Shown piece by piece: positions 21,900-61,446 of a stretch of DNA of 64,000 nucleotides (position 1 is its first letter; every line of letters starts with the position of its first letter). The notes under the pieces are model-generated. The model was not told the DNA's origin. It worked only from the letters and a program-made list of their open reading frames with translations, and made no database searches. The position numbers and the translations under genes are program-made. The DNA is taken from positions 2,671,729 through 2,735,728 of the forward strand of contig NW_003314271.1 of NCBI RefSeq assembly GCF_000143415.4, given 5' to 3'. The stretch is from Selaginella moellendorffii (taxonomy: Eukaryota; Plantae; Lycopodiophyta).

Positions 21900-24800
21900 G
21901 AATGAGGACTGGGATGAGAAGGATAATGGTGGTGGAAGTCCTGAACAAGGTCAGGAGAATGAATCAAGTTGTCCGCAGGTTCCCAAGTGCGTTCCTCAGG
22001 TTAGTAACCCTTCCAATCTACCAGATAGTAGAGTTTAGACTGTGAGATCTTGGAATCAAGGATGTCCTGAACCTCGTACTCAGACCCATCCTCGACCTGC
22101 ACTGGTGGAGGTGGAGGAATGACCCGATTTAGAATAAGACTGAGAATATAAAGCTTAAGGAGAGAGGAGTGAAAAACGAGGTGAATTTGATATGAGGAGG
22201 GAAGTGCAAAGTAATAAATGACAGGATTAATGATGGCAGTGATAGGGAAAGGACCGAGGCATTTAAAATTGAGTTTGGGACATGGCCTGGTGGTGGAGAT
22301 ATTTCGCCTGAGGAGCCAAACTTTATCCCCGATATTGTAAGGGGGACAATCCTGACGATGGACATTAGCAAATGTTTTGTGAGATTCCTGAGCACAATGG
22401 AGGTGGAAGGAGATGGAGTTGTGGATTTCCTGGAGGTTGAAGACAAATGCCTCAAAGCGGGGATTTGAACAAGAGGATTCGGATGGAGAAGGAAGTGAGA
22501 GATTGAATTGAGGATTTTGGCCAGAGTTTGCAAAGGGGGAAACTCGAAAGGAGGAGTGAACAGAGTTGTTATAGGAGAACTCAGTAAGGGAAAGGATATC
22601 AAACCAGTCATCCTAATGATAGTTGATGAAGCACCTTAGGAATTGTTCCAACATCTAAATCGTTTGCTCGAACTGTCCATTAGTTTGAGGATGATATGCT
22701 GAAGAGAGGTTGATCTTCACTCCAAGCAACTACAAGAACCATTTCCAGAAATGAGAGATAAACTGAGGTCTCTAATCCGAAACCACATCTATAGGAATCC
22801 CATGAAATCGGAAAATTTCCCTGAATACCAGTTTTGCTATGTCCTCGCCCAAAACTCCTTGGTATACAGCAGGAAGTGCACCATCTTTGTGGAGCGATCC
22901 ACCACAATTAAAATGCTGTTGAAGCCTCCAGAACTCAAAAGATCACTCAAGAAATCCATGGAGATGGATTTACAAGGACCTAAAGGGATTGGGAGGGAAT
23001 GAAGCAAACCTGAAGGAAGGTGGCAAGGTATTTTATTTTGGGCGCAAGTGTCACAAGAGGCAACAAAAGCTTTGTTGTAGTCATCCATGTGGGGCCACCA
23101 AAAGTCCCGTGCAACCAGCTCATAGGTTTTCAAAATGCCGAAGTGACCAGTAGTCGGGCTATCGTGGCACACCAGCAAGACCAACCTTTGAGCATCACCT
23201 TCAAGAATGTAAAGCTATTCCCTACGGTACAACAAGCCATCTAAGAACTCGAACTCATTAAATTGCTAGCAGTCAGGAATCATTGGGTGTCCAGCCTGAA
23301 GATGGGGGAAAATGTCGTTGGTGAGGTCGTTGGATTGAAGATTTTTTTTTATTGCCTCTATCAAGGAGGAGTCCTGAGGGGCCAGGAAATTGCCATATTG
23401 TGAAGCCGATCAAGACCGAGGATAATCTGATCCTGTTGATCGAAGGCAAGATTACCAAGCCTGAGACTAAGATAAGAGTGCCTTGAAAGAGCATCAGGAA
23501 GGCCCTGAAGCTTTCCAAGTCTGTACTTGATAACAAAGTCAAACCGATTCAGGAATTGTGCCCACCTTGCCTGACGACGGCTCAAAACTCGGGAAGTGGC
23601 AAAATATTCGAGACTTTTGTGATCTATCCAGACTGTTGTTTGATGGCTTGCCCCCTCCAAGAAATGATGCCACTCTCCAAAGGAATCCACAATGGCAAGA
23701 AGCTCCTTGTCATGGATTTCGTAATTAGTCTCCACAGGCTAGAATTTCCGAGAATGGAAAGCGACCAGATGAAATTCCTGATCCGCACCAAGTTGAGACA
23801 GCACAGCACCGATGGCAAAGTTGGAGGCATCCGCCTCAATGAAGAAAGGTTGTGAGGGATCAACGTGGATCAAGACAGGAGCAGAACTGAAAGCCACCTT
23901 GAGTGTGTCGAAGGCCTACTAGGCAGCAGCAAACCAAGAGAAGGGAACATCCTTGCAAGTGAGATGCGTGAGAGGAAGGACAATGTTGGAGTAGTGAACA
24001 ATGAATTTGCAGTAGAAGTTGGCAAAGCCAAGGAAAACCTGAACGTCCGACATTGATTGTGGAGGCTCCCATTCGAGAATAGTCTTGACTTTGGTAGGAT
24101 CCATCATGATACCCTCATGAGTGACAATGTACCCAAGGAACTCCACAAACTCTTGATCAAAGGAACATTTCTCAAGCTTCGTGTATAGGCCATGTTCCTG
24201 CAGCTTCACCAGCAACTTGCGAACATGCTCGTCGTGCTCCTCCTGAATTTTTTAGTAGATGAGGATGTCGTCAAGGTAGACGATCACCATCTAATCTAGA
24301 AACTCCTGAAAGATGTTGTTCGCCATGTGTTGGAAAACTGCTGGAGTATTTGTCAAGCCAAACGACATGACAGTGTACTCGAAGTGGCCATAGTGGGTTT
24401 GGAATGTAGTCTTCCATTCATCGCCAGGCCGGATCTAGATCAGGTTGTATGCTCCACAGAGGTCGATCCTGGTGAAGAAGCGGGCACCACCAAGGCGTTC
24501 CAATAGGTCCGAGATCAGAGGCAGTGGATAATGGTTCCGAACAGTCACCTTGTTCAAGCCTTGGTATTCGATGACTAGCCGCAAACTCCCATCCTTCTTC
24601 TTGACAAAGAAGACAGGTGCTCCAACCGGGGACTACGAATGCTGAATGTACCCCGAGGCAAGGTTCTCGTCCATGTACTTTTTGAGGGCCTTAAGCTCGG
24701 ACAGGGATAACCCGTAGATAGGCCCCCACAAAGGTGACACTCCTTGTAAATCAATGGGACAGTCGTAAGGTCGATGAACAGGTAGTGCACTAGCTTTTTT

Positions 24801-25087: not shown

Positions 25088-28073
25088 AAGCAACTAAAGA
25101 GAATGACTGCCTTGGTTTTTGCTAAATTCCCTCACCAAGGTTCCCGCCTATTGTACTATCTCCTACTTGGTCCTACTCAGTTTCAGCTACTCACTGCACG
25201 AGCAACGGAGTGTTAGCCATCCATCCACGGATTCCTAAATCTTTCTCAATCCCCCTCCCTAGGTTAGACTACACTTAAGGTTCGACTACACTCCCCGCAG
25301 GCACAAGCAGCCAAGCACACCAAGCCTCTAGGTTCTTAACATCCCTTGGTATAACAAGGTTTAATTATGGAACCCTCTAAATCCCAAGCCTTGGGTGCAA
25401 CACTTGTTTCAGGACATCAGGGTGAAACACCGTGGCCTAACGGCCCAGTATGGGTACCTCTACCCCCCCCCACTTCCATCCCAAAGGGAAGGCCCAAGCC
25501 CCTAGGAAGGGTGAGGACCAATGAGCCACAAGGTACTCAAGTGGGACACCACTCCACCAGAGCCAAGAGCACCGCAGTCGGTTTCCCTTTCGGGAGTGGG
25601 AGCTGCTCTTGAGCACTTTCTTGGATGGCCCCTCTGGCACCACCCGAGTCCATGCTCACTCCCACCAAGGCCTCTCGGCCCCAGTCTCAACCTCAAGTCA
25701 GTTTGGAAGCACCACTGAAGAGTTCCTTCAAGACTGGTTCTTAGACCTCACTATCCCTTTCACCCCTTGACCCGTATTAGTACTCAGACTCGGTCTCGGA
25801 CTCGATCTCGAACTCGATCTCAAACCCGACTTTGGACTCGGTCTCGGACTTGATCTCAGACCCGATCTTGGACCCAATCTCGGACTCGACTTCGGACTCG
25901 ATCTCGGACTCGACTTCGGACTCGACCTCGGACTCGGTCTCGGATCCGATTTGGATCTCAGACTCTGTCTCAAACTTGGTCTCGAACTCAGTCTCCAATT
26001 CGGCCTCGGACTCGATCCCAAACTCTATCTCGAACTCAGTCTCAGAGTCGGTTTTGGACTTGATCTTTGACTTGGTCCCACCTGATGAACTCTTTGTCAT
26101 TTCGGTCATGCTTTCGGGGATCTTTTAGCCTACGACACCTCAGGGAGTTGGTTCCTTACATAATGATAGAATCGGACCACAGAGCAACTCCCAAGCCTAT
26201 AGCCTAAGGAGCGAAGAGATAGGAGCACGAAGTGACTTGGAACAATCCTAAAGTATCTAACATCCCAATGCTAAGATCAGCATGCAAAATGGAGCCAAAC
26301 GGAGTTTGGCATTATTTCAGCATACCAATGTCCTAACGCGAGGATATGGGTACTCCACCAGCTAGCATGGTGTGGAGCTTGGGCTTAGACCCAAGCCAGA
26401 CGCAAAACAAGGACAGGTATGCAAGTGAGAGCTAGACTATGCATAAGATTATTAGTCGGCCATACCTGACCTACCCACTATCCCTACTATACATTTGGAA
26501 CCCCCCATGAGCCACAAGGTACTCAAGTGGGACACCACTCCACAAAAGTCGAGAGCACCGCAGTCGGTTTCCCTTTCGGGAGTGGGAGTTACTCTTGAGC
26601 ACTTCCCTGGATGGCCCCTTTGGCACCACCCGAGTCTATGCTCACTCCCACCCAAGGCCCCTCGGCCCCAGTCTCAACCTCAAGTCAATTTGGAAACACC
26701 ACTGAAGAGTTCCTTCAAGACTGGTTCTTGGACCTCACTATCCCTACTATACTTTTGGAACCCCTTGCAGCCCCCCCCCCCCCCCCACCCCCTCCCCCTG
26801 GGAGATGCATGCTTTGGGCTTTCACCCCTTGACCCGTATTAGTACTTGGACTCGATCTCGGACTCGATCCCAGACCCCACTTTGGACTCGGACTCGATCT
26901 CGGACTCGACTTCGGACTCGACCTCGGACTCGGTCTCGGATCCAATTTGGATCTCGGACTCTGTCTCAAACTCAGTCTTGAACTCGGACTCGATCCCAAA
27001 CTGTATCTTGAACTCGGTCTTAGAGTTGGTTTTGGACTTGATCTTTGACTCGGTCCCATCCGATAAACTCTTTGTCATTTTGGTCATGCTTTCGGGGATC
27101 CTTTAGCCTACGACACCTCGGGGAGTTGGTTCCTTACAGAATGATAGAATCGGACCACAGAGCAACTCCCAAGCCTACAGCCTAAAGAGTGAAGAGATAG
27201 GAGCATGAAGCGACTTGGAACAGTCCTAAAGTATCTAGCATCCCAATGCCAAGACCAGCACGCAAAACGGAGCTAAATGAAGTTTGGCGTTATTTCAGCA
27301 TACCGGTGGCCTAACGCGAGGATATGGGTACTCCACCAGCTAGTATGGTGTGGAGCTTGGGCTTAAACCCAAGCCAGACGCAAAACAAGGACAAGCACGC
27401 AAGCGAGAGCTAGACTATGAGTAAGATTATTGGTCGGCCATGCCTAACCTACTCACTATCCCTACTATACATTTGGAACCCCCTATAGCCCCCTCCCCCC
27501 CCCCCCCTGAGGAACACACGCTTTAGGCTTTCACCCCAGGCCTCCCTTAGTATTAAGAGTTAGTCTCTGGGACAAACTCAAAACTTACTAAATATGGAAT
27601 GTCCTTAAATTGCAAATTTGGACACAGGACGAACACCATTGTGTTCAAAACAATCTCTACATTTCATAGATATGCCAAATGAGCAAATCTGGACACTTTT
27701 CATAAATAGCATTTAGAACCAAAATGAGACTAACACAAAGGGCATGATAGCGAGGGTGTTTGGTAGACATGGTAAGCTATCATCCACCAATATTAAGGGA
27801 CTAATCTCAATACGCAAGGGTTTTTGTCAAACCAGTGCAAAAGAGAACTAAGAGCTAAGCTAAGTATGCTCAACTAGAAACACATAGGAGTTCCTACTTT
27901 ATGTCCATCTGGCTAAGTACAAGTGCTAAGCCCAATAAACTAACACTTGAATAAGAGGCGCTAATAAAAGGAACCAGCAATATTGACCTCCTACCATCGT
28001 GGCAGTAAGGAAAAAGCGTTCGTAAGGACTGGCCAACAGATAACTTTCGATACCCGAAGTCACATTCGCGACA
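25088..28073 (+). repeat. Repeat family X (solo-LTR-like, ends ...cgcgaCA) with an internal ~986-bp tandem duplication and (GGACTC)n-like hexamer arrays
   Basis: Unit start atgagccacaaggtactcaagtggg at 25521 and 26507; hexamer arrays at about 25785-26070 and 26845-27055; homologous to 21040-21444 plus 37114-37610. Confidence 0.75.
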
Positions 28074-29398
28074 ATTGTCCTAAATAATATGACATTCACA
28101 AGAGCAACAATTCATATTGGCCAACATAACCATCTAGTGGCGAGTGGGATATACTTGGAGACTTTGGATGTGGTTACATTTGTTGTTTCAAAAATAGTAG
28201 ATCAATCTCCAAGAGCTTAACCTACAATTATAACTACTAAAGCAGTAGATGAGTTGATTCTTCAAAATTTCTTACAATCAATTTTAAACACTATAACATT
28301 TTCATCCTAATAATTGAGCAAAGCACTAAATAGTCTTTTGGCACTTACCAATAAATGAAAGTAAGATCTAGTCAATTTAAAATCTTATTTTGTATTTACT
28401 TTAAAATATCTTTGCAGGATGTGAATTGTAATAGAAAACTTTAGAAGAAAATCTCTCTTTTTTTTTTTTTTTTGAGAAGTCCTCAAGTCTCAATGCAATT
28501 TTAAAGTTTAAAAAATGAGTTTAACTACAACTTCTTCCAAAGCATTGCTTTTCTAGGACTAATCTAAGTTGAAGCCAAAAAATGATGTTATGTTTTCAAG
28601 ATGTTGGTGGATGGTATTAAAAGTGGAGTTGATCTTGTTAAGCAGATGTTACCAAGTATGGATTTGCAATACTCTTGGATATGCTTTAATCATACACACA
28701 GAATTCCTAAATAGTCTATAATTAACTCCCAATGTGTACAATCTAAGGTAAATATGCATTTATTCAATTATTATATTAATAATTATGTAGAGCATAATCT
28801 TTAATAGTGATAATTGTTTATGAGATGAGAGGAGAAGACATGCCAGCTCAAGTTCTTTTTTGGACACTACTGAACAAAATATACTAAGTTGGAACAGGAT
28901 TTTTAATACCACTAATATTTTATGGTTTTGTGAGTGATGAAGCGCAAGCAAATTGATGAGCTATTAGAACTACCTACAATAGTGGTCTAGATAAAGTTTT
29001 AGTTGGCCAAGAGAGGAATTGTTTTTTCCATTAAGGGTAAAGTCTACATGAACACATAGAGAAATATATTCAAGTTGAATATTATGATGAATATAAGTAA
29101 TTGTACTAGAGTTTAAAATTTGCAAACACTTTAGAAAATGCAAAAAAGCAATATAAGTTCATACGTTTATGACAGATTTGAGGTAATGTTTATGAGAAAG
29201 CAATTCCATGACTATAGACTTGGCTAGCATAATGGTTTAATCTTTCTATTATAGATGAGTTATAAAATAGTTGCTACTTAAATTCTAACAATAAATTTTA
29301 CCAAGAGTTACCATATGATGTGGCTAGCAAAAACAAATGACTTTAAACGTGTATCTCTATCTGAAGCTTGCTAGAATGATTTAGTTATTTTTATTCTA

Positions 29399-29570
29399 CT
29401 ATAAGCTCTTGAGTTTGGACTTCTTAGGAGGTCACCCAACTCTATAATCTCTTGAGTTTGGATTTTTTAAGAAGTCAATTAACCCTATAAGCTTATGAGT
29501 TTGGAATTCTTGGGAGGTCACTTAGCCCAGTATTACTCAAACCCAAGGACACTTAACCCTAAATATCCCA
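29399..29570 (-). repeat. 5S rRNA-derived sequence (Cassandra TRIM LTR-like) with a 43-bp unit repeated three times
   Basis: gggaggtcacttagcccagtattactcaaacccaaggacacttaac resembles the reverse complement of the plant 5S internal control region; units start at 29399, 29442 and 29485. Confidence 0.6.
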
Positions 29571-30339
29571 AAACCCTTAATCGATTGGAAAAGGGGGTGC
29601 ACTTTTATTTATGGGCCCTTTCCTTTTATATTTGAACCCTATAGATTGTCTTTCGAGTCATTCCCTTTAATTGCTTACATTTATAACAAGCCTTTATGTA
29701 TGCTTATATGAAAGGCTAGGTTATAAAAAATAGACTGAATCTTAAAGATTTAATAGCACACTTATCTGCTACAACATCAATACGACTTCCTAGTCACAAT
29801 CTCGTAGAGCTGGTGGGATTAACTTTAAATGATCTTGGAATTCACTCTGCAACAAAACCAACTGGGAATCTTAAAACTATCAAAAGGAAGCAACAAGCAA
29901 GTGAGCTGATATAGCTAACAAATTCACACCGTCTCAAGTATGAGTATGTTACTAGAGAATAAAGAGGACCAATGCTTCTAAGCAACCAAAAGTTTATATG
30001 CTTCCAAGTCAAAGAACAAAAAATTCATAAGATTGAGTGGGCTATATATTGACCAAATTATCCAAAAACCAGAATATATACCATGTACTTGGCCAATTGA
30101 AAAAGGATGAACTTGATGAATTTGGAGCTTCAGACTTTGGTTGAAGCATGCTTTAAATTTGAAGAGAACACTTTATAACCACCTATTCTTAAGAAGTTAT
30201 GAAAACAAGAAATAATAAATGTGTGAAGATTACAAATATTTGGTCAAAGGAAGCAAATGCAACATACTCAAAAACATTATAGTTGAAGGCAGAAGTTAAA
30301 AGTGTCAATATCAAGTAGCAGTATCGTCATCATGAATAT

Positions 30340-30520
30340 AAAATTCTCAATTATGAAACTGATATTGTAAACAGGAAGGTTTACAACATCAAAATTAACC
30401 AATTCCCAAGTTGCACTTGCATATACTTCTTTCCATTTTAGACTTTTATCAAGTCTTTCATCCCTTGCAAGCATTATATTTTGTATATTGTATGCTTCTT
30501 AGGATAGATCCAAATGTTTA
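30340..30520 (+). pseudogene. Decayed SWIM zinc-finger exon, possibly transposase-associated
   Basis: Reads VYNIKINQFPSCTC...FIPCKH (CxC...CxH) with an internal stop. Confidence 0.55.
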
Positions 30521-31032
30521 ACTTTGGATTTGTCTAAATATGAAATGTTCATGATATTGAAAAAGAATTAGATATTGGTATTATATTCGAATTTAATATA
30601 AGATAAATAATTTTTTATTTATAAATTACATCTAAAATAACATATAGCATTTTTATAATAGGGATTTTATGTAATAATAATAATAATAATTAATATAAAT
30701 ATGCATTATAAATTAGAGGATGCTTACATAAATAATTAGTATAAATACTAAATATTAAATATTAGAATAATAATTTCTTCTGTAAACAAGTTTATAAGGC
30801 AAAACCTCTATTAAATAGTAACTATTGCTACTAAGATTAGATACTGGTAGTTTATACAAATCTAAATATTACTAAAATTATTAATTTGGTTTAAAATACC
30901 TATTTAATAAAAATATTACTGCTAAAACCTTAATAGAATATTCTTTAGTGTGCCAGAATATTCACAAATTATTCTTGTCAATGGCAATGGAGATCCCCCT
31001 GGGGAGATGGACAATGGAACATAGATTAGTCC

Positions 31033-32335
31033 TCACGTCCTGCACCCCAAAGGCTCCATCCCATCCCTCCTAGACATAAATCTATAGCCAGCAATGAATA
31101 ATTCATGTTGCTGCTCCACAGAGATGACCTTGCTGCCAGGACACATGGCACACAACACCCCTAGCTTCCATATCTCGAGGTAGTGGTTGAGCTTGCCAAC
31201 GGTCCAGCGCTTACCACAGTGCACATCTCGCAGTTGTTCCATGCCTGCCAGTCGAGATCGTTGTCGTGCTCCACACGCGCAAACACCGCTTCAAAAGATT
31301 ACAGCATCCTCCTTAACTCAAGGCTCATCCGCTACCAGCCATGATCTTCAAAGCTCGAATTCATAACTTTGATTGTGAGACTCCAGAAAGAACATGAACT
31401 CAAGCTTCGTGAGAAAAGGTATTGCCAAAGATTATGCCAAATGGTCGACAGGCCAAACCACTTTTGAGCTCACGAGCTCAATGCATACCAGGAGATGCAA
31501 GGTCAAAACAGTCAATAAAAGTCGATAATGTCCTCAAAGCTTATTAGAAAAATACAAAAAAAACTCACTTCTGACCCTGTCAAGGATTTCAAAACAACTT
31601 GTTGCGACGGTACCTGAGAACCTAATCTTCGTACCTGAGCAAGCAATCTTTGCAAGGGCCTCGATGAGTTCCGCTGGATGATCTTCACCATCTCCGCCTT
31701 GTATCCATGCCTGGAAAAAGAAAAATCTTGAGACAATAGCAACAGGGATGGTCCAAAATTGAGCTCCACATTCTGTCATTTCCAGAATGTTCTCCTGTGC
31801 AGTTGTTCTGAGCATGATCGATCAAGCTGCCAAACCTTTGGCTCGTCCAGTCCCAGTATCGCTGCTTAGTTTGGTTTGACAATTTAGTTTGGAAACTAAA
31901 AAGAACTAGAGGTCAGGCAGAACAACACAATCGTCAAACCTCCAGTACCATGTTGCTGTGCTTCTTGGGATCGTGCAAAGGTTGAACACTCACTTGTTGT
32001 TCCTTAAAGGTATTGTCCACAGTGCCAGACGCTGCCCGAGCTCCTCTCCTACAAGGACGCCTACTTCCATAGCCCCACTCCAAGGTCCAGATCTTGCTGG
32101 CTCTCAAGTGCTACTTGAAGACGTGGATGAGGCAGATGGTGGCGGTGTTGTTCGAGCAAGACAAAGGTGATGGTATCGCTGCGAGAGCCATCTCGTTTGG
32201 GGACGCCGTTCAGGAGTGTGGCAACCATGTTATACTTGATCCCTACTGCATCAAGACATAGTTCCAGGATAGCGCTGGCTATAGAGCTTCTTTAGAAAGC
32301 TCGTGAGGTTTGATATAAACCATTGAGGAATCCAT
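31033..32335 (-). pseudogene. Fragmented gene of unknown family
   Basis: Coding-like GC island with splice-like sites and several short broken ORFs; no domain recognised. Confidence 0.3.
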
Positions 32336-32879
32336 TGAACATTTGCTCCTAAATATTTAAACAAACTCTTGAAGTTATTTAAAGACACTAAACATTCTAA
32401 ACAAAATTAATCTGGACCGTCAGATAGAAAAATATACTGCTGATAAATATACAAGCATAGAAATATCGCTAGATTTTTCAATGCCAATTGTGTCCTTGAC
32501 AAATTTACTCACTCCTAGTTGAATTTGTCAGTATTTAGGATTTGGGAATATTGAGGGACCAGTTCCTCTTTCCACCTCATTGCACGGATGCATAGGCCTC
32601 AATCAGCTTTTTATGAAGTCCCAGGCTTTGCTGGGAGCTGTGCATGGAGCCAATGTCAAAAAATTAATGTGAGCACATTCTTGGGGGATTGCTATTGCTT
32701 GGTATGATGGCTGTATGCCATGTATTGTAAGAGTGTATATGGAGCGCATCCACGATGAAAACATAGATACTGCATTTACAGATTCCACTATACGAATCTG
32801 GATTTATGTCACTACACACCACTTGTCTGGGATCCATGCCGCCAGATCTTATTCGAGGAACACCACCATGACCTTGTGA

Positions 32880-33303
32880 TCACACGCCATTTTCCGATTC
32901 CGTGTTGTCATCTATGGTGATTGGAAAACCAATTTCGTCGTCTGTTGGGAGAGCAATGTTGGCGTTGTATCGGCAAGTCTTATTACACCTGATGAAGCCG
33001 ACTTTGCAACAGTAAGTCCCTTGCTCGCAACAATAGTTACAACCACCCAATTGATTACGGAGGCAACAGTAGTACTTCTTGTTGGGATTGCACTCCTCCA
33101 CACAGGTTGCACCGCCAAATGGGGTAGGAATACCGAGGCAGCAATCCTTCTTACCAACTGCGCATAAAGATTTCATTCAGAACAATGGCCAACATGAAAT
33201 TATACTTACGTTTGAAAGGCGTGCATACTTTTGCTGCGTTAGAGAGCCCCACAATTACAAGTGCCATTGCAAGCAGCAAGAGAAGGCGGAATGAGGCAGC
33301 CAT
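32880..33303 (-). CDS. Secreted cysteine-rich peptide precursor, 123 aa (signal, 14-Cys domain, acidic tail); exons 33210..33303 and 32880..33157
   Basis: ATG 33303; signal MAASFRLLLLLAMALVIVGLSNA; a 52-nt GTAAG...GCAG phase-1 intron gives an uninterrupted frame to the stop at 32880. Confidence 0.85.
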
Positions 33304-34674
33304 GAGTTGATAACAAAGAGAATGAAGAACAAAGAACGAAGTGCAAAGGTTCTTAAATTCTCACTCGGGAGCCTCTGCAGCCGTTGGATATCTGGTGCAG
33401 CAGCCGTCAGATCCTGGACCACAAAGAGTTTTGAATCAGACTGGCGAACCTCCATCTTTATCAACCAGTAAATGATTTTTTTAACATTTTGTATGTTGGG
33501 TGCCACGCATGCCCTCCCTTGTAAAAATTTATACAAAAGAGTGGTCCCAGATTGAGCATCTCTTGTCAATCAAACTCAATAGAACACTTAACCATTGATC
33601 TCAATATGACACTAACCACAGGAATATTCCAAGAATATTCCATAACTAATGGGATTTATAGATGCAACATCTTGAAGAATTGGGAAGTTGGCATAAGGCT
33701 CATTCTTTGTTTGTTTCATTGGTATTAAAGTAGCATGTTTTTTTAGGGATGGCAGAAGAGCAGAATATAAATCCTAATGAGGAATATACTGTTAGTGAGG
33801 AAGAATCTCTTGATGATATTATTGTGTGGCAAGGTTATTAGATTTTTGAGGTTTAAAGCAACATTAACGAAGTTTGTCAAAAATTTTGAAAAGGTTAAAA
33901 CCAATTACTAGAGATTATATAAGGGATTTTATTTTTAAATGCATATTATTTGCAAGTTTTGTGATATTTGCTTTAGTCTCACAAGCATCTATAATGAACT
34001 GTTAAAGGTGCAATATTTCATCAAAAGTTTAAGCTTAAGTTAAGAAGGATTTTCTAGCAATCTTAATTGATATTATTATTAAGGCTCAAATCTTTTTGCT
34101 AAAACCATCAATCAACTTGGTCAACTCTGATCAATGGGATGGTCTACAGGGTAGTCAACATGATGATTAGTTAGCCAATTCTTCATATTCGGGGAAGAAA
34201 CAACCATTGTTATGTCATGGCTCGAAGAGTGGAAATGGCAATGAAAGAGAGGGGAAAGAAGAGGGTGAAAATTTCGTAGAGTCAAAAACAGAACCCTAAT
34301 TTGAGTTTAGGGAATTTTTCTTGATTCGAACTCGATGAACAACAGGGGAAGATGTGGGAGATGGTGATGTAGGAGAGATAAGCTGTAATTCCTTCTAACA
34401 GATCTGAGGCTGGACAAAGTATGAAAAACCTTTATTAACTCACTCTAAGGAGTTGACTTCAAATTAGCTTTGATGTAGTTCTTCCACTACAAATAAACTT
34501 TATCACAAAAAAATCAATTTTTACTTTATTCTTATGCCAACAACTTTCTTACAATTCTAACCAAGAATCAACTTCTTTGCTATCACAAACATCCAATGAT
34601 GACTTTCATTCCACAATACCATAATCCTTGACATGCTTAATGTACCAATACTAATTATGAATACAAAATTATGT

Positions 34675-36669
34675 GAAGCAGGAAATCCTTAATGAGATTG
34701 ATAGAATCTTTAAAGTTCCTCTTTCTCCTACCATACGAGATCTGAGGGTTGAATGCATCAGTGGGAATTTTGTGTCTCCATCTTCTGGACTTAGGGAAAT
34801 GTTGCTCATTCGAGTACACATCGGGTCCACCGTCACTGATATCGCCTTCAACACCATCAATAGCAAGTCCTCCTTTGTGGTGCTCAGCCTTTCTTGGTTC
34901 CAATTGCAACCAGACAATTAGGACTTAATGCTTTGGTGCTACTTGACTTGGGTGCAACTTCCTACTTCATGGACACGGACTTTGTTGCTCGACATCGAAA
35001 GAAAGGAGACATGGGATGCAAAAGTTGCAGGAATTGGTGGTGGCTTTGATGAAAGGTGGTGAGGAGCTTGATAAAGAAGAAAAATGATTTTTATTCAAGG
35101 AGTCGAAACAGACAGCTCTTACTTTGTTTGGACAGGGTCGTTTCCCAATTGCAATAGAGGTGGACCTTGAGGCAAAGTGAACTTGAGCAGTTAGGGAGGC
35201 TTCTTGGGACACACAGCTGCTTTGTGATTAGAATCAGTATAGTAGAGGCAAAGATTATGAGATACTTAACGTTGCTTCTCAGTAGGACTCAACTTCCCTT
35301 TGATGAATCGGGGAGTACCAAAGATATTTATCGAAACCGGAGCAATAGGTTCAGGAGTATGCCCTGAAGACTCAAGTTGGGATTCCTGAGTCTAGGATGG
35401 GAAAACAGCGGTGCGGCAACTTTCTTGACGACATTCAAAGAGACGATTGTCACTTCGAACAGCTTTGTTAATGGCGTCTGACAGGTCCGTGGGATCCTCC
35501 ATAGTGAGCAACAAATCCTTAACACTTTTATTGAGGCTAAAACGAAATTGATCAATTAGGGCCCACTCATCCCACTAAGTGTCCCAAGGCAAGGAGTTGG
35601 AACTCTATAGCATAGATCGAGGCAAGACAAGACCCCTAAGAGAGACGTCTCATTTTTGTGGTGGCAGCCCAAACTCGATCCGTCTCGCCAAAGCATGCTT
35701 CAAGCTTTTCTTTGAACAGCTGAAGATCCATCAGCTCCAGACCGTGTTACGAACACGGCCGGGATCCCGGCCGTGTTCACCGTGTTTCACGAACACGGCC
35801 ATGGGTCGTGTTGCCACGGCTGTGTTCGTGAACAGTGGTCCGTGTTAGTAACACGGAACACTGTTCAGAATATTCTCGCATGGAATATTCTGGTTTTAGG
35901 GCGCATGGCATCACACGACAATCCAGCCAGGGCGCACCATTTCAGGGCACAGCAGCAGCAATCCAAGGCAAACAAGCATGGCGCAGCAATCCAGCATACT
36001 GCGAAAGCATCCTTCTTCGCGATGGTGGGATGAGGTAAGTGTTCTTGAGAGCAGGGGGCATGGCCACAAATTATGGTCATGCAAATACTGCCCAATGGTG
36101 AACAAATTGAGTGGTGTTGATCGTGTGCGAGCTCATCTGTTAGGAGAAGGCCCAGGCAGCAAGGATATTGTGAGTTGTCCTCTCATCCCAGGTAACAAGA
36201 AATATTCAGTAGAATATTCGTGAGCCATCGTGGGCCGTGATCGTGTTCCGTGTTTGGGTTCCTGAAATCTGAGGCTCGTGTTCGTGTTCCATGTTCGTGT
36301 TCATAACTATGGCTCCAGAACCACGACCCCTTTCATGCTCTTCTCTAGGAGAGGAAAAAACCATGACAAAGTTACACCTTTGAGCAACATCTCGATCACG
36401 CTGATTTGAGACTCGGAAATGGGGTATTGCCGATGTTGAAGTGCGAAGATCAACTCCATCTAATTTAAGAATCCGTGAAGCTCTGAACACTTGCCTGAGA
36501 ACTTCACTGGGAAACTCACCTTTGGTTCAGGAACTCTGCTTGATCCTTGAGCCAAAAGTGAAGCAAGCTCCTGTTGCATGTGAAGAAGGGTTGCCTTCAA
36601 CTCGGTATTCTAAAACTGGATCTTTGCAAGGACTTTGGCAAAGAAATCAGGATGGCTTGGAGACTCCAT
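34675..36669 (-). pseudogene. Chromovirus gag-protease (disrupted; protease locally inverted; hAT insertion in gag)
   Basis: MESPSHP...EPKVSFPVKFSG..LHGFLN, WDEWALIDQF, and a degenerate zinc knuckle LCLYYTDSNHKAAVCPK; the protease motif LVLLDLGATSYF reads on the plus strand. Confidence 0.85.
35742..36311 (+). mobile_element. Internally deleted hAT (Ds-like) element retaining a BED-finger fragment
   Basis: 8-bp TSD GCTCCAGA at 35734-35741 and 36312-36319; imperfect 16-bp TIRs; subterminal gaacacg/cgtgttc repeats; ORF 35978-36223 contains WSCKYC...RVRAHL. Confidence 0.88.
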
Positions 36670-38365: not shown

Positions 38366-41300
38366 ATGGAGCTTGTCGATTGCCACAAGCATTTTCTGGG
38401 CAGGCGCGTGGAGCAAGGGGTCCCCGCCCGCCAGTGCCTGAGGAGGATCAATCACAGGAATTCCTGCTCATCAAGCCAGAGGTGTGAGGCCGTGAAGCTT
38501 CCCGTCCAAGAGCTTCCAAGCCTCAAGATGGAAGAGGATGCTCCTTCGGGTAGCCGAGCCCCAGCCCTCTCCTCCTACGATGTTCCAAGCGAGGTCCTCA
38601 AGGAGGCGGCTTTCGGGAACTTCGATCGCCTCCTCGACTGTGGCAATGGGACTTTACGTCCCAACGTGTTCGTCAAAGCTCTCAAGAACTTACAGGATGG
38701 AAGCGTGGCTTTGGATCTCTTCGAGTGGGCCGAGAGGAATGGTCACAGACCGAGCCTCAACGCTTACAACTTGCTGCTCGAGCTGCTTCTCTCCAACCGG
38801 ATGTACGACGTCATGCACACCGTGTATGACAAGCTGGTGAGGATCTACTCGCCGGACGCTTACACCGTGGGGATCTTGCTACGATCCTTGCTAAAGTCCG
38901 GGAAGATCGAGAAGGCTCACAGGTTTGTTGAGCAGCTCCTCGTCAAGGGACTGTGCGATATCAGCACTTTCAACATCTATATCAGCGGGCTTTGCCGAGC
39001 AAGCCGGATAGGTGACGCACAGACGGTCTTCGATGGGATGAGGAAGCACGGGTTCTGGCCAAACAGGATAACTTACAATGCTCTTCTCAGCGGCCTCTGC
39101 AATGGTGGAAGGATGAGCGATGCCCAGGCGCTATACGAGAGGATGATCAAGGCCGGATACTCGCCAGACGTTGTAACTTACAACACTCTCCTCCATGGAT
39201 TCTGCAAGGTCGGCAAGCTTGACGAGGCGCTTAAGATATTTGACGGGGCCGTGAAGCGGGGGTTTGTTCCCGACGTGGTGACTTACAACGCGCTCATAAA
39301 TGGCTTCTGCAAGGCGGACAAGCTGGACGAGGCGCAGAGGATCCTCCAGAGGATGGTGTCCGAGAGTTTGGTTCCGGACGTGGTGACTTACAACTCTCTG
39401 GTGAACGGGCTTTGCAAGAACGGCCGGGTTGACGAGGCTCGGATGCTGATTGTCGACAAGGGATTCTCTCCGAACGTGATCACCTACAGCACTTTGATCA
39501 GCGGGCTGTGCCGGGAGCTCAGGGTTGACGAGGCCATGAAGTGTTTCCACGAGATGATCCAGCTCGGGCTGAGGCCTCACACGATCATTTACAACTCTTT
39601 GATCGACGGCCTTGGCAAGGCCAAGCGTTTGGAGAGTGCCAGGCAGCTGCTCGAGAAGATGGTATTGAACGGCTGCAAGCCGGATATCGTCTCCTACAAC
39701 GCTCTCATCCATGGCCTGGCAAGAGAACAGGGCGTCTCGGAAGCACTCAAGCTCTTCGGCAGTGTGCTGAGGCAAGGCTACGAGCCTGAGGTGCCGACGT
39801 ACAACATCCTCATCGATGGCCTGCTCAAAGAAGATAGAGTGAACGAAGCCTTCGAGCTCTTCTCCGGCTTGGTAAAGCACGGCCTGGAGCCGGATGCGAT
39901 CACTTACACGGTGTTTATCGACGGGCTGTGCAAGGCAGGCAGAGTCGAGGACGCTCTCCTCATGCTCAAAGACATGGACGAGAAAGGCTGCGTTCCTGAC
40001 GTTGTCTCCCACAACGCTGTTATCAACGGCCTGTGCAAGGAGAAGAGAGTGGACGAGGCCGAGGTTCTACTCTCTGGCATGGAAGCGAAGGGATGCTCGC
40101 CGAACGCTATCTCTTTCAACACCCTCATTTGCGGCCAATGCAGGGCGGGGAAGTGGAAGAAGGCCATGACCACTTTCAAGGAGATGCTCAAGAGAGGTGT
40201 CAAGCCAACAGTCGTGACTTACAACATCCTCGTCGACGGCCTTTGCAAAGCCAGGCAAGTTGACGAGGCCCGAGAGCTGCTGAGCACTAGTGGATTCCTG
40301 GCGGACGTCGTCTCGTGCACCTCGCTCATCAACGGCTTCTGCAAGGAAGGCAGGATCAAAGAGGCCATCACTCTCTTCGACGCAATGATTGAGAAGGGCC
40401 GAGTTCCGGACGTGGTGACTTACAGCGCTCTCATAGACGGGCTGGGAAAGGCAGGCAAGCTCGACGATGCTCGCAGGCTCCTCGGCGCTATGGAGGCCAA
40501 AGGCTGCATTCCAAACGTCTACACGTACAACTCCCTCATCTCGGGTCTCTGCGGCCTGGACAAAGTGGACGAAGCTCTGGAGCTGTTCGTGGCTATGGTG
40601 GAGAAAGGCTGTGTTCCGGACACCATCACGTATGGGACCATCATCTCGGCACTTTGCAAGCAGGAAATGGTGGACAAAGCTCTCGCTCTTTTCGATGGCT
40701 CGCTGGAAGCGGGGGTGGTGCCGACTTCCGGGATGTACTTCTCGCTTATCGATGGCCTCTGCGCGGTGGCGAGAGTGGACGAAGCTCTCAAGCTTCTACA
40801 GGCCATTCCCGAGCATCACAGGCCAGGCTCCGAGGCCTACAACAGCATCCTCAGCGCGCTAACCAGTGACGGCAAGCTCGCGGAGGCTCAAAGCCTGCTC
40901 GAGACGATGCACGAGCGGGACTTGGTTCCGAATGGATTCTTCTACAACGCGCTCATGGTGGCGCTGTGCAAGCAGCCGGGTGGGAGTAGCAGCGTCGTGA
41001 AGATCCACAGGAAGATGGTGAAGAAGCGATCGGTGCCGGAGCAGGGGCTGGTTCGGTGCTTGTGCATGGAGAGCCTCGCGGACGAGGCCGACGAGATCTT
41101 CCAAGGAATGCTCGCGGACAAGTGCCTTCCAGACGCCTTGACGGTGAACACGCTGGTGAAGAGCTTGTGCGAGCACGGCAAGGTGGAGAGGGGCCTCGAG
41201 GTTTTGTCGCAGCAAAGCGGCAGCAGGGAGAAGCGCGAGATGGTGGCTGGGTTTGAGGCTGTTCTTGCGGAGCTTTGCAAGGAGAGCGGCAAGCTGGATC

Positions 41301-41485
41301 GAGCGATGGAGGTGCTGGAGGAGATCAAGGGAGTGTCGAGCTTGGCGAGTTACAAGATCGTTTTGGAGTGCTGCGCCAGGGATGGGAGAGTGGAGGAGAT
41401 GGAGAGGCTGATCCGGGAGATTAGAGAGAGTGACCTTGCTCAAGATGGAGAACTGGAAGAGTATCGAATCACACTCGACAGTTAA
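38366..41485 (+). CDS. P-class pentatricopeptide repeat protein, 1039 aa, intronless
   Basis: Long array of 35-aa repeats of the form VVTYN.LI.G.CK.G..DEA; N-terminus resembles a transit peptide. Confidence 0.95.
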   Translation: MELVDCHKHFLGRRVEQGVPARQCLRRINHRNSCSSSQRCEAVKLPVQELPSLKMEEDAPSGSRAPALSSYDVPSEVLKEAAFGNFDRLLDCGNGTLRPNVFVKALKNLQDGSVALDLFEWAERNGHRPSLNAYNLLLELLLSNRMYDVMHTVYDKLVRIYSPDAYTVGILLRSLLKSGKIEKAHRFVEQLLVKGLCDISTFNIYISGLCRASRIGDAQTVFDGMRKHGFWPNRITYNALLSGLCNGGRMSDAQALYERMIKAGYSPDVVTYNTLLHGFCKVGKLDEALKIFDGAVKRGFVPDVVTYNALINGFCKADKLDEAQRILQRMVSESLVPDVVTYNSLVNGLCKNGRVDEARMLIVDKGFSPNVITYSTLISGLCRELRVDEAMKCFHEMIQLGLRPHTIIYNSLIDGLGKAKRLESARQLLEKMVLNGCKPDIVSYNALIHGLAREQGVSEALKLFGSVLRQGYEPEVPTYNILIDGLLKEDRVNEAFELFSGLVKHGLEPDAITYTVFIDGLCKAGRVEDALLMLKDMDEKGCVPDVVSHNAVINGLCKEKRVDEAEVLLSGMEAKGCSPNAISFNTLICGQCRAGKWKKAMTTFKEMLKRGVKPTVVTYNILVDGLCKARQVDEARELLSTSGFLADVVSCTSLINGFCKEGRIKEAITLFDAMIEKGRVPDVVTYSALIDGLGKAGKLDDARRLLGAMEAKGCIPNVYTYNSLISGLCGLDKVDEALELFVAMVEKGCVPDTITYGTIISALCKQEMVDKALALFDGSLEAGVVPTSGMYFSLIDGLCAVARVDEALKLLQAIPEHHRPGSEAYNSILSALTSDGKLAEAQSLLETMHERDLVPNGFFYNALMVALCKQPGGSSSVVKIHRKMVKKRSVPEQGLVRCLCMESLADEADEIFQGMLADKCLPDALTVNTLVKSLCEHGKVERGLEVLSQQSGSREKREMVAGFEAVLAELCKESGKLDRAMEVLEEIKGVSSLASYKIVLECCARDGRVEEMERLIREIRESDLAQDGELEEYRITLDS

Positions 41486-59167: not shown

Positions 59168-60103
59168 ATGGCTTTCCTCGCAGGAAAAGCAACATTCCTT
59201 GTGATAGTCTTAGCAGCAGCAGCGACAATAGCAGCCGCTTCTTCTCCTCGCAGATTGCGTAGCAAATCAAGAGATGGAGGGATCGTCTCCTACTGGGGCC
59301 AGTTCGGGCAAGAGGGCCCCTTGGACAAAGTTTGCGCGAGTGGGAACTACGAGATCATCAACATCGCGTTCCTTAATGAGTTTGGAAACTTCCGGCAGCC
59401 CGTGCTGAATCTGGCAGGCCACTGCGACGCCACCACCTCGGATGGCTGCGCCGCCGTGGGCGGTCAAATCAAGTCGTGCCAGTCAATGGGGGTCAAAGTC
59501 TTGCTCTCGATCGGCGGCGCCAGCGGTTCCGCCCTATTGGTGAGCGAGGCCGACGCTGCCAATCTCGCCCACCAATTGTTTGACAGTTTTCTCGGCGGTG
59601 AATCCTCGTATAAGCCTTTAGGCGACGCTGTTCTTGATGGAATCGATCTGGACATTGAGTCGGGCAAGACCCCGAAGCTATACGCATCGATGGTCCGCCA
59701 TCTTCGCACCATTGCCGGGAGATCCAAGATTATCGTCGCTGCTGCTCCTCAGTGCCCGTTTCCGGACGAGAACCTCGGCTCGGCGCTCAAGGTTCCGGGG
59801 CTGTTTGATTTGATCTTCGTCCAGTTTTACAACAATCCCCCCTGCGCGTTCGATGGCAGCGATAGCAAGAAGCTCCTGGATTCTTGGAAGCAGTGGACGT
59901 CGTCGATCCCCATGGCGAAGTTCTACCTGGGATTGCCGGCCTCTCGCGCCGCCGCTGGATCGGGCTTCCTTCCAGCAAATGTGGCCAGATCCAGCGTGCT
60001 TCCCGTCATCAAATCGACTCGCAACTACGGTGGAATCATGCTGTGGGCTGTTTTCTTCGATCAGCAAGAGTCGTATAGCGATTCCATCCTGTCCAGCGTC
60101 TAG
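59168..60103 (+). CDS. GH18 class III chitinase
   Basis: Signal peptide, YWGQ, catalytic [21 protein letters not shown]. Confidence 0.96.
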
Positions 60104-60336: not shown

Positions 60337-61446
60337 ATGACAAAGATGTTTGCTGTGATTCTAGCTCTAGCATTGGGGGCAGCAGTGGCAAACTTCGCCC
60401 AAGCCCAAGATGGTTCGTGCTCTTCTTCGAAGCCATGCCCACCGGGATACTGTTGTAGCAAATGGAACTACTGCGGCCAAGGCTCGGAATACTGCGGCAA
60501 TACTCCACCGGCACCACCATACGGAGGAACACCGCCTCCTCATCCATCGCCATCGCATCCATCTCCGCCCCATCACCCAAGTCCGCCGAGCCCCCCATCT
60601 CCATCCCACCCGGGCGGGAAAGGCAAGATCGCGGCTTACTGGGGACAGAATGGAAATGAAGGTCCTCTGGACAAGGTTTGCGCGAGCGACAACTACGAGA
60701 TCATCCTCCTCTCCTTCCTCAACGAGTTCGGCAACTTCCAGCGCCCGATGCTCAATCTCGCCGGCCACTGCGATCCATACTCCCACGGCTGCACTGTTCT
60801 AAGCGGTCAAATCAAGTCGTGCCAGTCAAGCGGGGTCAAAGTCTTGCTGTCGCTCGGCGGTGGCGACTCTCCCGGGAGATTGGTGAGCGATGCCGACGCC
60901 GCCGATCTCGCCAAGCGATTGTGGGCGAGCTTCCTCGGCGGGGATTCCTCGGACAGGCCCTTGGGCGACGCTGTTCTTGACGGGATCGATCTGGACGTGG
61001 AGTCGGGCGCCACCCCAGAGTTATACGCCGGGCTCGTTCGCCACCTTCGCAGCATTGCCGGGAGCTCCAAGGTTTTGGTGTCTGCCGCGCCGCAGTGCCC
61101 CTTCCCGGATGCAAATCTCGGCTCCGCGGTGCAAACTCCTGGATTGTTTGATTTCATCTTCGTGCAGTTCTACAACAATCCCCCCTGCGCATATGTTGAT
61201 GGCGACGATGGAAAGCTCCTGGATTCTTGGAAGCAGTGGTCTTCGTCGATTCCCAGCGCGAAGATCTATCTGGGATTGCCGGCGTCTCCGAGCGCTGCCG
61301 GGTCCGGGTTTCTTCCGGCTCATGTCGCGACGTCGAGCGTCTTGCCGGAGATCAAGTCATCTCACAACTATGGTGGAGTGATGCTTTGGTCGGTGTTTTA
61401 CGATCAGCAAGAGTCTTACAGCGAGTCCATCCAGTCCAGTGTTTAA
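60337..61446 (+). CDS. GH18 class III chitinase with an N-terminal hevein (CBM18) domain and Pro/His linker
   Basis: Signal peptide; CSSSKPCPPGYCCSKWNYCGQGSEYCG; PPPHPSPSHPSPP linker; catalytic DGIDLDVE. Confidence 0.95.
   Translation: MTKMFAVILALALGAAVANFAQAQDGSCSSSKPCPPGYCCSKWNYCGQGSEYCGNTPPAPPYGGTPPPHPSPSHPSPPHHPSPPSPPSPSHPGGKGKIAAYWGQNGNEGPLDKVCASDNYEIILLSFLNEFGNFQRPMLNLAGHCDPYSHGCTVLSGQIKSCQSSGVKVLLSLGGGDSPGRLVSDADAADLAKRLWASFLGGDSSDRPLGDAVLDGIDLDVESGATPELYAGLVRHLRSIAGSSKVLVSAAPQCPFPDANLGSAVQTPGLFDFIFVQFYNNPPCAYVDGDDGKLLDSWKQWSSSIPSAKIYLGLPASPSAAGSGFLPAHVATSSVLPEIKSSHNYGGVMLWSVFYDQQESYSESIQSSV

Follow-up and report, generated by a model that had tools for sequence, protein, structure and literature searches.

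Results

A spliced and transcribed cysteine-rich peptide gene

We analysed a 64,000-nucleotide stretch of Selaginella moellendorffii DNA (the window), which is 100% identical to scaffold GL377575.1 around 2.70 Mb and carries a small gene for a cysteine-rich peptide on its minus strand. The gene comprises an exon at 33303–33210 (94 nt, starting with the ATG at 33303) and an exon at 33157–32880 (278 nt, ending in the stop codon at 32882–32880), separated by a 52-nt phase-1 intron at 33209–33158 with the boundaries GTAAGT...GCGCAG (GT..AG). Joined, the exons give the 372-nt frame, 123 codons plus stop, that an earlier note had assembled from the DNA letters. Its product is letter-for-letter the protein P0007, i.e. 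SELMODRAFT_440446 (XP_002968592.1, LOC9650533). The gene model is already public, labelled "uncharacterized" by NCBI and automatically named "Granulins domain-containing protein" by UniProt. A literature search found no paper on SELMODRAFT_440446, on six related locus tags or, for these genes, on Selaginella together with granulin; the gene is annotated already and its gene family is undescribed.

To follow transcription and splicing, Logan contigs of four public runs (X1, X4, X15 and X17) were mapped on positions 32300–33900; such contigs demonstrate presence and splice, while strand, transcript ends and expression level are not readable from them. RNA-type contigs of X1, X4 and X15, which come from three studies, omit exactly 33158–33209, the intron for which the earlier note had sought RNA-seq support, and the ends of the skipped segment are CT..AC on the plus strand, i.e. 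GT..AG on the minus strand. The DNA-like run X17 yielded a 791-nt contig that retains the intron and has indels upstream. A minor X4 contig (33130–33239) also keeps the intron, at a word depth of 22 versus 3399 for the spliced form, and may stem from pre-mRNA not yet spliced or from traces of DNA. Variant positions among the contigs represent at least two near-identical gene copies, and spliced contigs of 506–558 nt span the peptide gene alone, indicating a stand-alone gene. The transcript bounds given by the contigs are roughly 32671–33330, with a 5′ untranslated region (UTR) covering at least 33304–33330, as a spliced X4 contig extends to 33330, and a 3′ UTR of approximately 150–210 nt (32671–32879; contigs end at 32671 in X4, 32687 in X1 and 32727 in X15). 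A TATA-like AATTTAAGAA at 33350–33359 (minus strand), ~20–30 nt upstream of the 5′ UTR, was read directly from the sequence and constitutes weak evidence.

The translated precursor opens with a predicted signal peptide (residues 1–24; 33232–33303), whose n-, h- and c-regions (MAASFR, a Leu-rich core and SNA-A) were judged by eye. This segment is identical across three close gene copies, and residues 3–24 form a helix in a single-sequence AlphaFold2 (AF2) prediction of the whole precursor, a model that is otherwise unusable with a predicted local distance difference test score (pLDDT) of 47. The end of exon 1 (33210–33231) encodes the predicted mature start, KVCTPFK, which contains Cys27, and the first base of Leu32. 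Residues 25–95 constitute a Cys-rich domain of 71 aa (7.9 kDa, isoelectric point (pI) 8.8), followed by an acidic C-terminal tail of 28 aa (residues 96–123; 32883–32966) with a pI of 4.05, and the whole secreted proprotein has a pI of 6.35. The charge counts on which the earlier note had built its idea of a neutralising tail were reproduced, with 11 Lys/Arg and 4 Asp/Glu in the domain against 0 Lys/Arg and 7 Asp/Glu in the tail, and the Asn residues it placed at the junction are present as Asn96 and Asn98.

Three tandem four-cysteine modules

A script recovered the 14-Cys pattern as first noted, with spacings of 9, 0, 11, 3, 7, 0, 7, 2, 0, 5, 0, 6 and 3. Read against the aligned paralogues described below, the 14-Cys domain is a run of three tandem ~20-aa modules of the form (Y)CC-x6..11-C-x3-C together with an extra pair, C27 and C74. 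Module 1 (residues 36–60; 33072–33146) aligns with module 1 of the paralogues and has an enlarged loop (CC-x11-C-x3-C); module 2 (residues 61–79; 33015–33071) reads YCC-x7-C-x3-C, with the extra Cys74 inside its C-x3-C; and module 3 (residues 80–95; 32967–33014) reads YCC-x6-C-x3-C and holds the sole N-x-T sequon (N90). Y60 and Y80 are conserved in alignments A2 and A3, and an aromatic residue precedes each CC. The expectation of up to seven disulfides in a new pattern thereby keeps its count and loses its single novel knot: since the cysteines fall into tandem four-Cys modules, the bridges are better read as 3 × 2 plus 1. Module 2 is the best-scoring unit against a single-module hidden Markov model (HMM); the 15 positions of this model do not suffice to score modules 1 and 3, and a whole-domain HMM was used instead.

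A module family in Selaginella

An exhaustive single-sequence phmmer search of 1.84 billion representative proteins with P0007 returned its own cluster, one 136-aa Selaginella protein (P0003; E 2.8e-4, and 1e-9 by pairwise BLASTP) and one bacterial giant protein. P0003 is a plain tandem repeat of the module, and two profile searches seeded from it led to P0011–P0023, giving 15 clusters, all from S. moellendorffii; the profile searches required shared 5-mers and may miss relatives in other lycophytes or ferns. The bacterial match (P0002, 3371 aa, E 1.5e-4) is spurious: it repeats a G-x-x-C-V-E...Y-Y-C motif nine times in immunoglobulin-like repeats and, having neither CC nor C-x3-C, was rejected as a relative. 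No paralogue of the peptide gene was found by tblastn within the window, and a scan of metagenome contigs with the family alignment gave 74 pattern matches and 0 relatives. The earlier note would have abandoned its peptide had there been neither transcripts nor homologues with the Cys pattern; the gene is transcribed, and the relatives found with the spliced protein keep 12 of its 14 cysteines.

These twelve (C37, 38, 50, 54; 62, 63, 71, 75; and 81, 82, 89, 93) are invariant in 17 of 17 aligned sequences. In the paralogues, the signal peptide is followed by an acidic spacer devoid of Cys and then, in direct succession, by three or four ~21-residue modules of consensus Y-CC-L-K-N-G-F/Y-G-(x)-C-x3-C-x5-x-Y, and a clean 21-residue block separates three-module from four-module members. 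The window gene and its two close copies (P0007, P0001 and P0006) depart from this layout in having an 11-residue module-1 loop, the C27 and C74 pair, no N-terminal spacer and a C-terminal acidic tail; C27 and C74 are confined to these three copies, where C27 lies in a Lys-rich N-terminal extension, and Cys27 is missing from the other subfamilies. To avoid circularity, an HMM was built from nine three-module paralogues with the window subgroup excluded. It scored P0007 at 26.5 bits (E 3.5e-10 as a single comparison), compared with a maximum of 6.7 bits among 1000 composition-preserving shuffles, and by this measure the family likeness of P0007 is far beyond chance. Gene structure points the same way: paralogue genes have three exons (signal peptide, spacer and repeats), the last of them immediately preceded by a phase-1 intron, and the phase-1 intron of the window gene lies at the equivalent place, within one codon. 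We consider it almost certain that the window gene is an expressed, secreted and genuine member of a Selaginella family built on the CC-x6/7-C-x3-C module.

An acidic region at either end of the repeats

The acidic tail occurs only in the three-copy, 123-aa subgroup. In every sequence examined, though, basic repeats are paired with an acidic non-Cys region, which is C-terminal in the window subgroup and N-terminal, on its own exon, in other members. The paralogue spacers have net charges of -2 to -6, with pI values of 4.4–4.8 in the five for which these were computed, and the repeats together with the C-terminus have pI values of 8.0–8.7. This family-wide charge split, seen in the sequences, favours the tail being a pro-region. 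Most members of the P0003–P0018 subfamily have Asn or Asp at the position aligned to Asn98, which is compatible with an Asn/Asp-specific protease and is weak evidence.

Comparison with known peptide families

The earlier note had recognised no known family in the peptide, and our Pfam, PDB-sequence and motif tests agree, matching no thionin, defensin, snakin/GASA, hevein, lipid-transfer protein (LTP) or granulin. With P0007, Pfam gave zero families at E ≤ 1, and the 14 family members scanned at E ≤ 10 gave no granulin, thionin, defensin (Gamma-thionin), GASA, hevein (Chitin_bind_1) or LTP; Chitin_bind_1 was detected in a neighbouring chitinase by the scan that covered P0007, which shows that the scan works. 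NCBIfam returned only noise for the peptide, a PDB sequence search with it only chance rows (e.g. nitrogenase iron protein), and the family profile against all PDB chain sequences (E ≤ 10) one chance C-type lectin row and no granulin.

Several known precursors nevertheless resemble this one in design. Ib-AMP1–4 of Impatiens balsamina are 20-aa, highly basic CCX8CX3C units with C1-C3/C2-C4 bridges, released from one multi-copy precursor with acidic propeptides of 16–35 aa (PMC10136942). They are the closest analogue of the Selaginella module, by a resemblance of design only: both systems have several basic four-Cys units of ~20 aa per secreted precursor, each with a vicinal CC ahead of C-x3-C, together with an acidic pro-region. 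CC-x8-C-x3-C itself is absent from all family members in our motif scan, the Selaginella loop having 6–7 residues (11 in module 1) instead of 8. Moreover, the Selaginella units are contiguous, with 7-residue linkers in place of 16–35-aa acidic spacers, and carry a net charge of +0 to +5 over three to four units without an Arg/Trp-rich character. No sequence similarity or common ancestry with Ib-AMPs is on record, and as far as our scans show, Ib-AMPs have no Pfam entry.

In class II plant defensins (e.g. NaD1), a short acidic propeptide at the C-terminus offsets the charge of the cationic domain and targets the protein to the vacuole. This concept is shared, whereas the Selaginella Cys domain has no gamma-thionin/defensin Pfam match and its model no cysteine-stabilised αβ fold.

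Thionin preproproteins have the same order of signal peptide, basic Cys-rich domain and acidic C-terminal prodomain, and share CC-x7-C-x3-C with module 2. In thionins, the coding region of the prodomain contains two small introns (PMC8279376), whereas the 28-aa tail of P0007 is intron-free and the sole intron of its gene follows the signal peptide. Thionins are recognised by CC at mature positions 3/4, an aromatic residue at position 13 and another four or six Cys spaced as in class 1/2 (PMC8279376); in the motif scan, the full 6- or 8-Cys spacings were absent from the family sequences. Pfam Thionin (PF00321) is unmatched, the Cys total and pattern differ, and the predicted Selaginella fold is all-beta and repeated.

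A predicted stack of beta-hairpins

When the 17-sequence alignment was supplied to AF2, the best model had a pLDDT of 70.9 and was all-beta, with six main strands. In this model the CC strand of each module pairs with its C-x3-C strand, giving three hairpins, and one hairpin per module is a plausible arrangement on the strength of the prediction.

Gene copies and genomic context

The peptide gene lies in an AT-rich, repeat-rich stretch, within a segmentally duplicated block of about 7 kb (27318–34713; 86–95% identity in blastn of locus L001 against the window). A copy of this block 122 kb away on the same scaffold (L001:9419-18037) carries P0001, and a third copy (P0006, at L003) is on GL377594.1. 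All 14 cysteines and the tail are retained in the three copies. Their flanks are 90–96% identical, versus about 99% for the coding sequence and 100% for the 52-nt intron; the higher identity of the coding sequence and intron suggests gene conversion or constraint. Each pair of copies has 4–5 coding differences, mostly non-synonymous and clustered in the module 1 loop (residues 40–45).

Elsewhere in the genome, P0015 and P0017 are 5 kb apart (L004:10001-10535 and L004:15245-15769), and several family members adjoin on scaffold GL377567.1. The L004 locus and the P0016 locus (L005, on the same scaffold at a distance of about 1 Mb) both adjoin Spb1/FtsJ-type methyltransferase genes, so these too are duplicated blocks. 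Some public gene models of the family appear to need revision. The annotated 135-aa model of P0016 (SELMODRAFT_404296, L005:10001-10585) apparently relies on an acceptor site further downstream and omits a module; if splicing followed the pattern of the neighbouring P0015 and P0017, the locus would encode GLQDTYCC... and four in-frame modules. P0018 has the same truncated start as the P0016 model, and P0014 (228 aa) seems to be another model error, its long C-terminal extension being foreign to the family.

The neighbours of the peptide gene in the window are typical of a land plant: a pentatricopeptide-repeat (PPR) gene, an F-box gene and two GH18 chitinases. The PPR gene (38366–41485, plus strand), 5 kb from the peptide gene, encodes an intronless 1039-aa protein with about 20 PPR motifs. 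The chitinases are tandem open reading frames (ORFs) of the GH18 (class III-type) family (59168–60103 and 60337–61446, plus strand), the second with an N-terminal hevein-like Chitin_bind_1 at 26.4 bits, just below the Pfam cut-off of 27.8. Decayed Ty3/gypsy-type pol ORFs lie at 22837–23735 on the minus strand (Integrase_H2C2, E 1.2e-18; RT_RNaseH, E 1.8e-16), and repeats common to the window and L001 lie at about 21.1–21.4, 26.2–28.1 and 37.1–37.6 kb.

Discussion

Our data describe a spliced, transcribed member of a Selaginella family in which basic four-Cys repeats are accompanied by an acidic region. The interpretation that we tentatively favour, at somewhat short of even odds, is that this gene encodes a secreted precursor with a cleaved acidic propeptide and a cationic defence domain. 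The gene, its splice, its transcript, the family, the repeats and the charge split were observed; for folding, processing, sorting and activity, we reason by analogy. The precursor would enter the endoplasmic reticulum and lose its signal peptide after SNA or SNAA. Each module would form two disulfides and thus a disulfide-stapled beta-hairpin, the three hairpins packing as one small domain, with C27–C74 as a seventh bridge between the N-terminal extension and module 2. The acidic tail might serve for charge balance, as a C-terminal vacuolar sorting signal, or both, until its removal near Asn96/Asn98 by an Asn-specific (legumain/VPE-type) protease; we judge the chance that the tail is a removed propeptide to be about even. 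The released ~8 kDa cationic three-hairpin domain would then act in defence, in analogy to products of thionin, class II defensin and Ib-AMP precursors, and an antimicrobial mature product is possible, if somewhat less probable than removal of the tail.

Several observations weigh against this interpretation. The modules alone are only mildly basic (net +3); the net +7 of the domain requires the Lys-rich N-terminal extension and the last residues, and even so the domain falls far short of the cationic charge of Ib-AMPs. For cleavage at Asn, analogy is the sole ground. The family was found in one species only, S. moellendorffii. One of five AF2 models was confident, the other four having a pLDDT of about 40, and no structural neighbour emerged: Foldseek against the PDB gave none at E ≤ 0.001 (the top weak rows, at E ≥ 1, being tumour necrosis factor (TNF)-receptor Cys-rich domains), an Atlas shape search gave TM ≤ 0.41, and VIA-align gave no Z ≥ 2. 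The dN/dS of 0.4–1.1 among the three copies derives from 4–5 substitutions, too few to interpret, and contig depth cannot rank expression.

We therefore weighed other explanations of the same gene. The peptide could be a divergent, stand-alone granulin-like hairpin stack, descended from the granulin domain of an RD21-type protease and acting as a protease-associated or signalling module instead of an antimicrobial, which we regard as unlikely. A granulin or epithelin module is likewise small and disulfide-dense with vicinal CC pairs, the architecture given for granulin is a stack of beta-hairpins (Hrabal 1996, cited in PMC1310530), and the hairpin stack of our AF2 model resembles it. UniProt automatically attaches the "Granulins domain" name to seven members (P0007, P0001, P0006 and P0020–23), the signature behind this label probably being a SMART or superfamily model; the window subgroup has a local CC-x10-CC-x5-CC run; and the nearest ESM Atlas cluster to P0007 is a plant cysteine-protease granulin fragment, at 0.81. 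This last value falls in the range reached by shuffled proteins, however, and an Atlas query with P0020 returned nothing. The granulin motif has 12 Cys, CX5-6CX5CCX8CCX6CCX5CCX4CX5-6C, and in plants granulin is found only as the C-terminal domain of papain-like cysteine proteases (PMC1310530). The Selaginella peptide gene stands alone, and the motif matched none of 17 family sequences, either strictly or with each spacing loosened by 2. The basic family has only three to four CC pairs, ~21 residues apart and alternating with C-x3-C; Pfam Granulin (PF00396) was silent in the scanned members, the PDB profile search met no granulin chain, and neither Foldseek nor VIA-align gave a granulin match. 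The automatic label on seven sequences thus has no backing from the Pfam model or from the defining motif.

Many plant cysteine-rich peptide (CRP) families are ligands, and the product may instead be a secreted signalling or cell-wall/developmental Cys-rich ligand of the EPF, RALF or STIG1 type, with the tail retained and no antimicrobial role; we hold this to be improbable to a similar degree as a granulin origin. The modest net charge of the modules, the near-neutral pI of the secreted proprotein and a tail conserved to the same degree as other parts of the protein in the three copies would all suit such a ligand. The family-wide split between basic repeats and an acidic part that can lie at either end is more readily reconciled with a dispensable pro-region than with a binding surface, and CRP families that are confined to one lineage, duplicated locally and expanding rapidly belong more typically to defence, but neither consideration is decisive.

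A polyprotein cut between modules into three ~20-aa, two-disulfide hairpin peptides in the manner of Ib-AMPs is less probable again. It would account for the nearness of the CC-x6/7-C-x3-C module to the CCX8CX3C of a multi-copy precursor, for the variation in module number (three or four) among paralogues, and for linkers that often contain KK or K-x-Y. Yet the modules abut with no acidic spacers between them, no conserved cleavage motif separates them, and AF2 packs the hairpins together; the simplest role for C27 and C74 would be to link the N-terminal extension with module 2, which argues for one intact domain.

Although module 2 exactly reproduces the spacing at the N-terminus of class 1 thionins, and thionin precursors likewise end in an acidic prodomain (PMC8279376), a divergent thionin is very improbable, as Pfam Thionin is silent in every member scanned, the full spacings are absent, the helix-helix part is missing from an all-beta AF2 model, and the only Selaginella thionin matches in 1KP are identical in sequence to some other-species matches and unconfirmed by polymerase chain reaction (PMC8279376).

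The combination that we propose, a secreted, basic, disulfide-rich domain with an acidic pro-region, is a known kind of design, and the family is one of many lineage-specific CRP families of plants. It is conceivable, though doubtful, that it represents a new structural class of plant Cys-rich peptides, a tandem four-Cys beta-hairpin stack invented or radically remodelled in Selaginella, possibly from a granulin hairpin, whose pro-region has shifted from the N-terminal to the C-terminal side in the window subgroup. Among vascular plants, lycophytes are sister to all remaining lineages, and to our knowledge hardly anything is known of the defence peptides that they make. As a transcribed multigene family of modular four-Cys proteins, for which our searches detected no relative elsewhere, the family would add a new scaffold to the plant CRP catalogue. 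Its members differ in module number (three or four) and in pro-region position (N- or C-terminal), which are built-in comparisons for the function of acidic pro-domains, and if the new class is real, it would be a natural experiment in how pro-domains neutralise and route cationic defence peptides.

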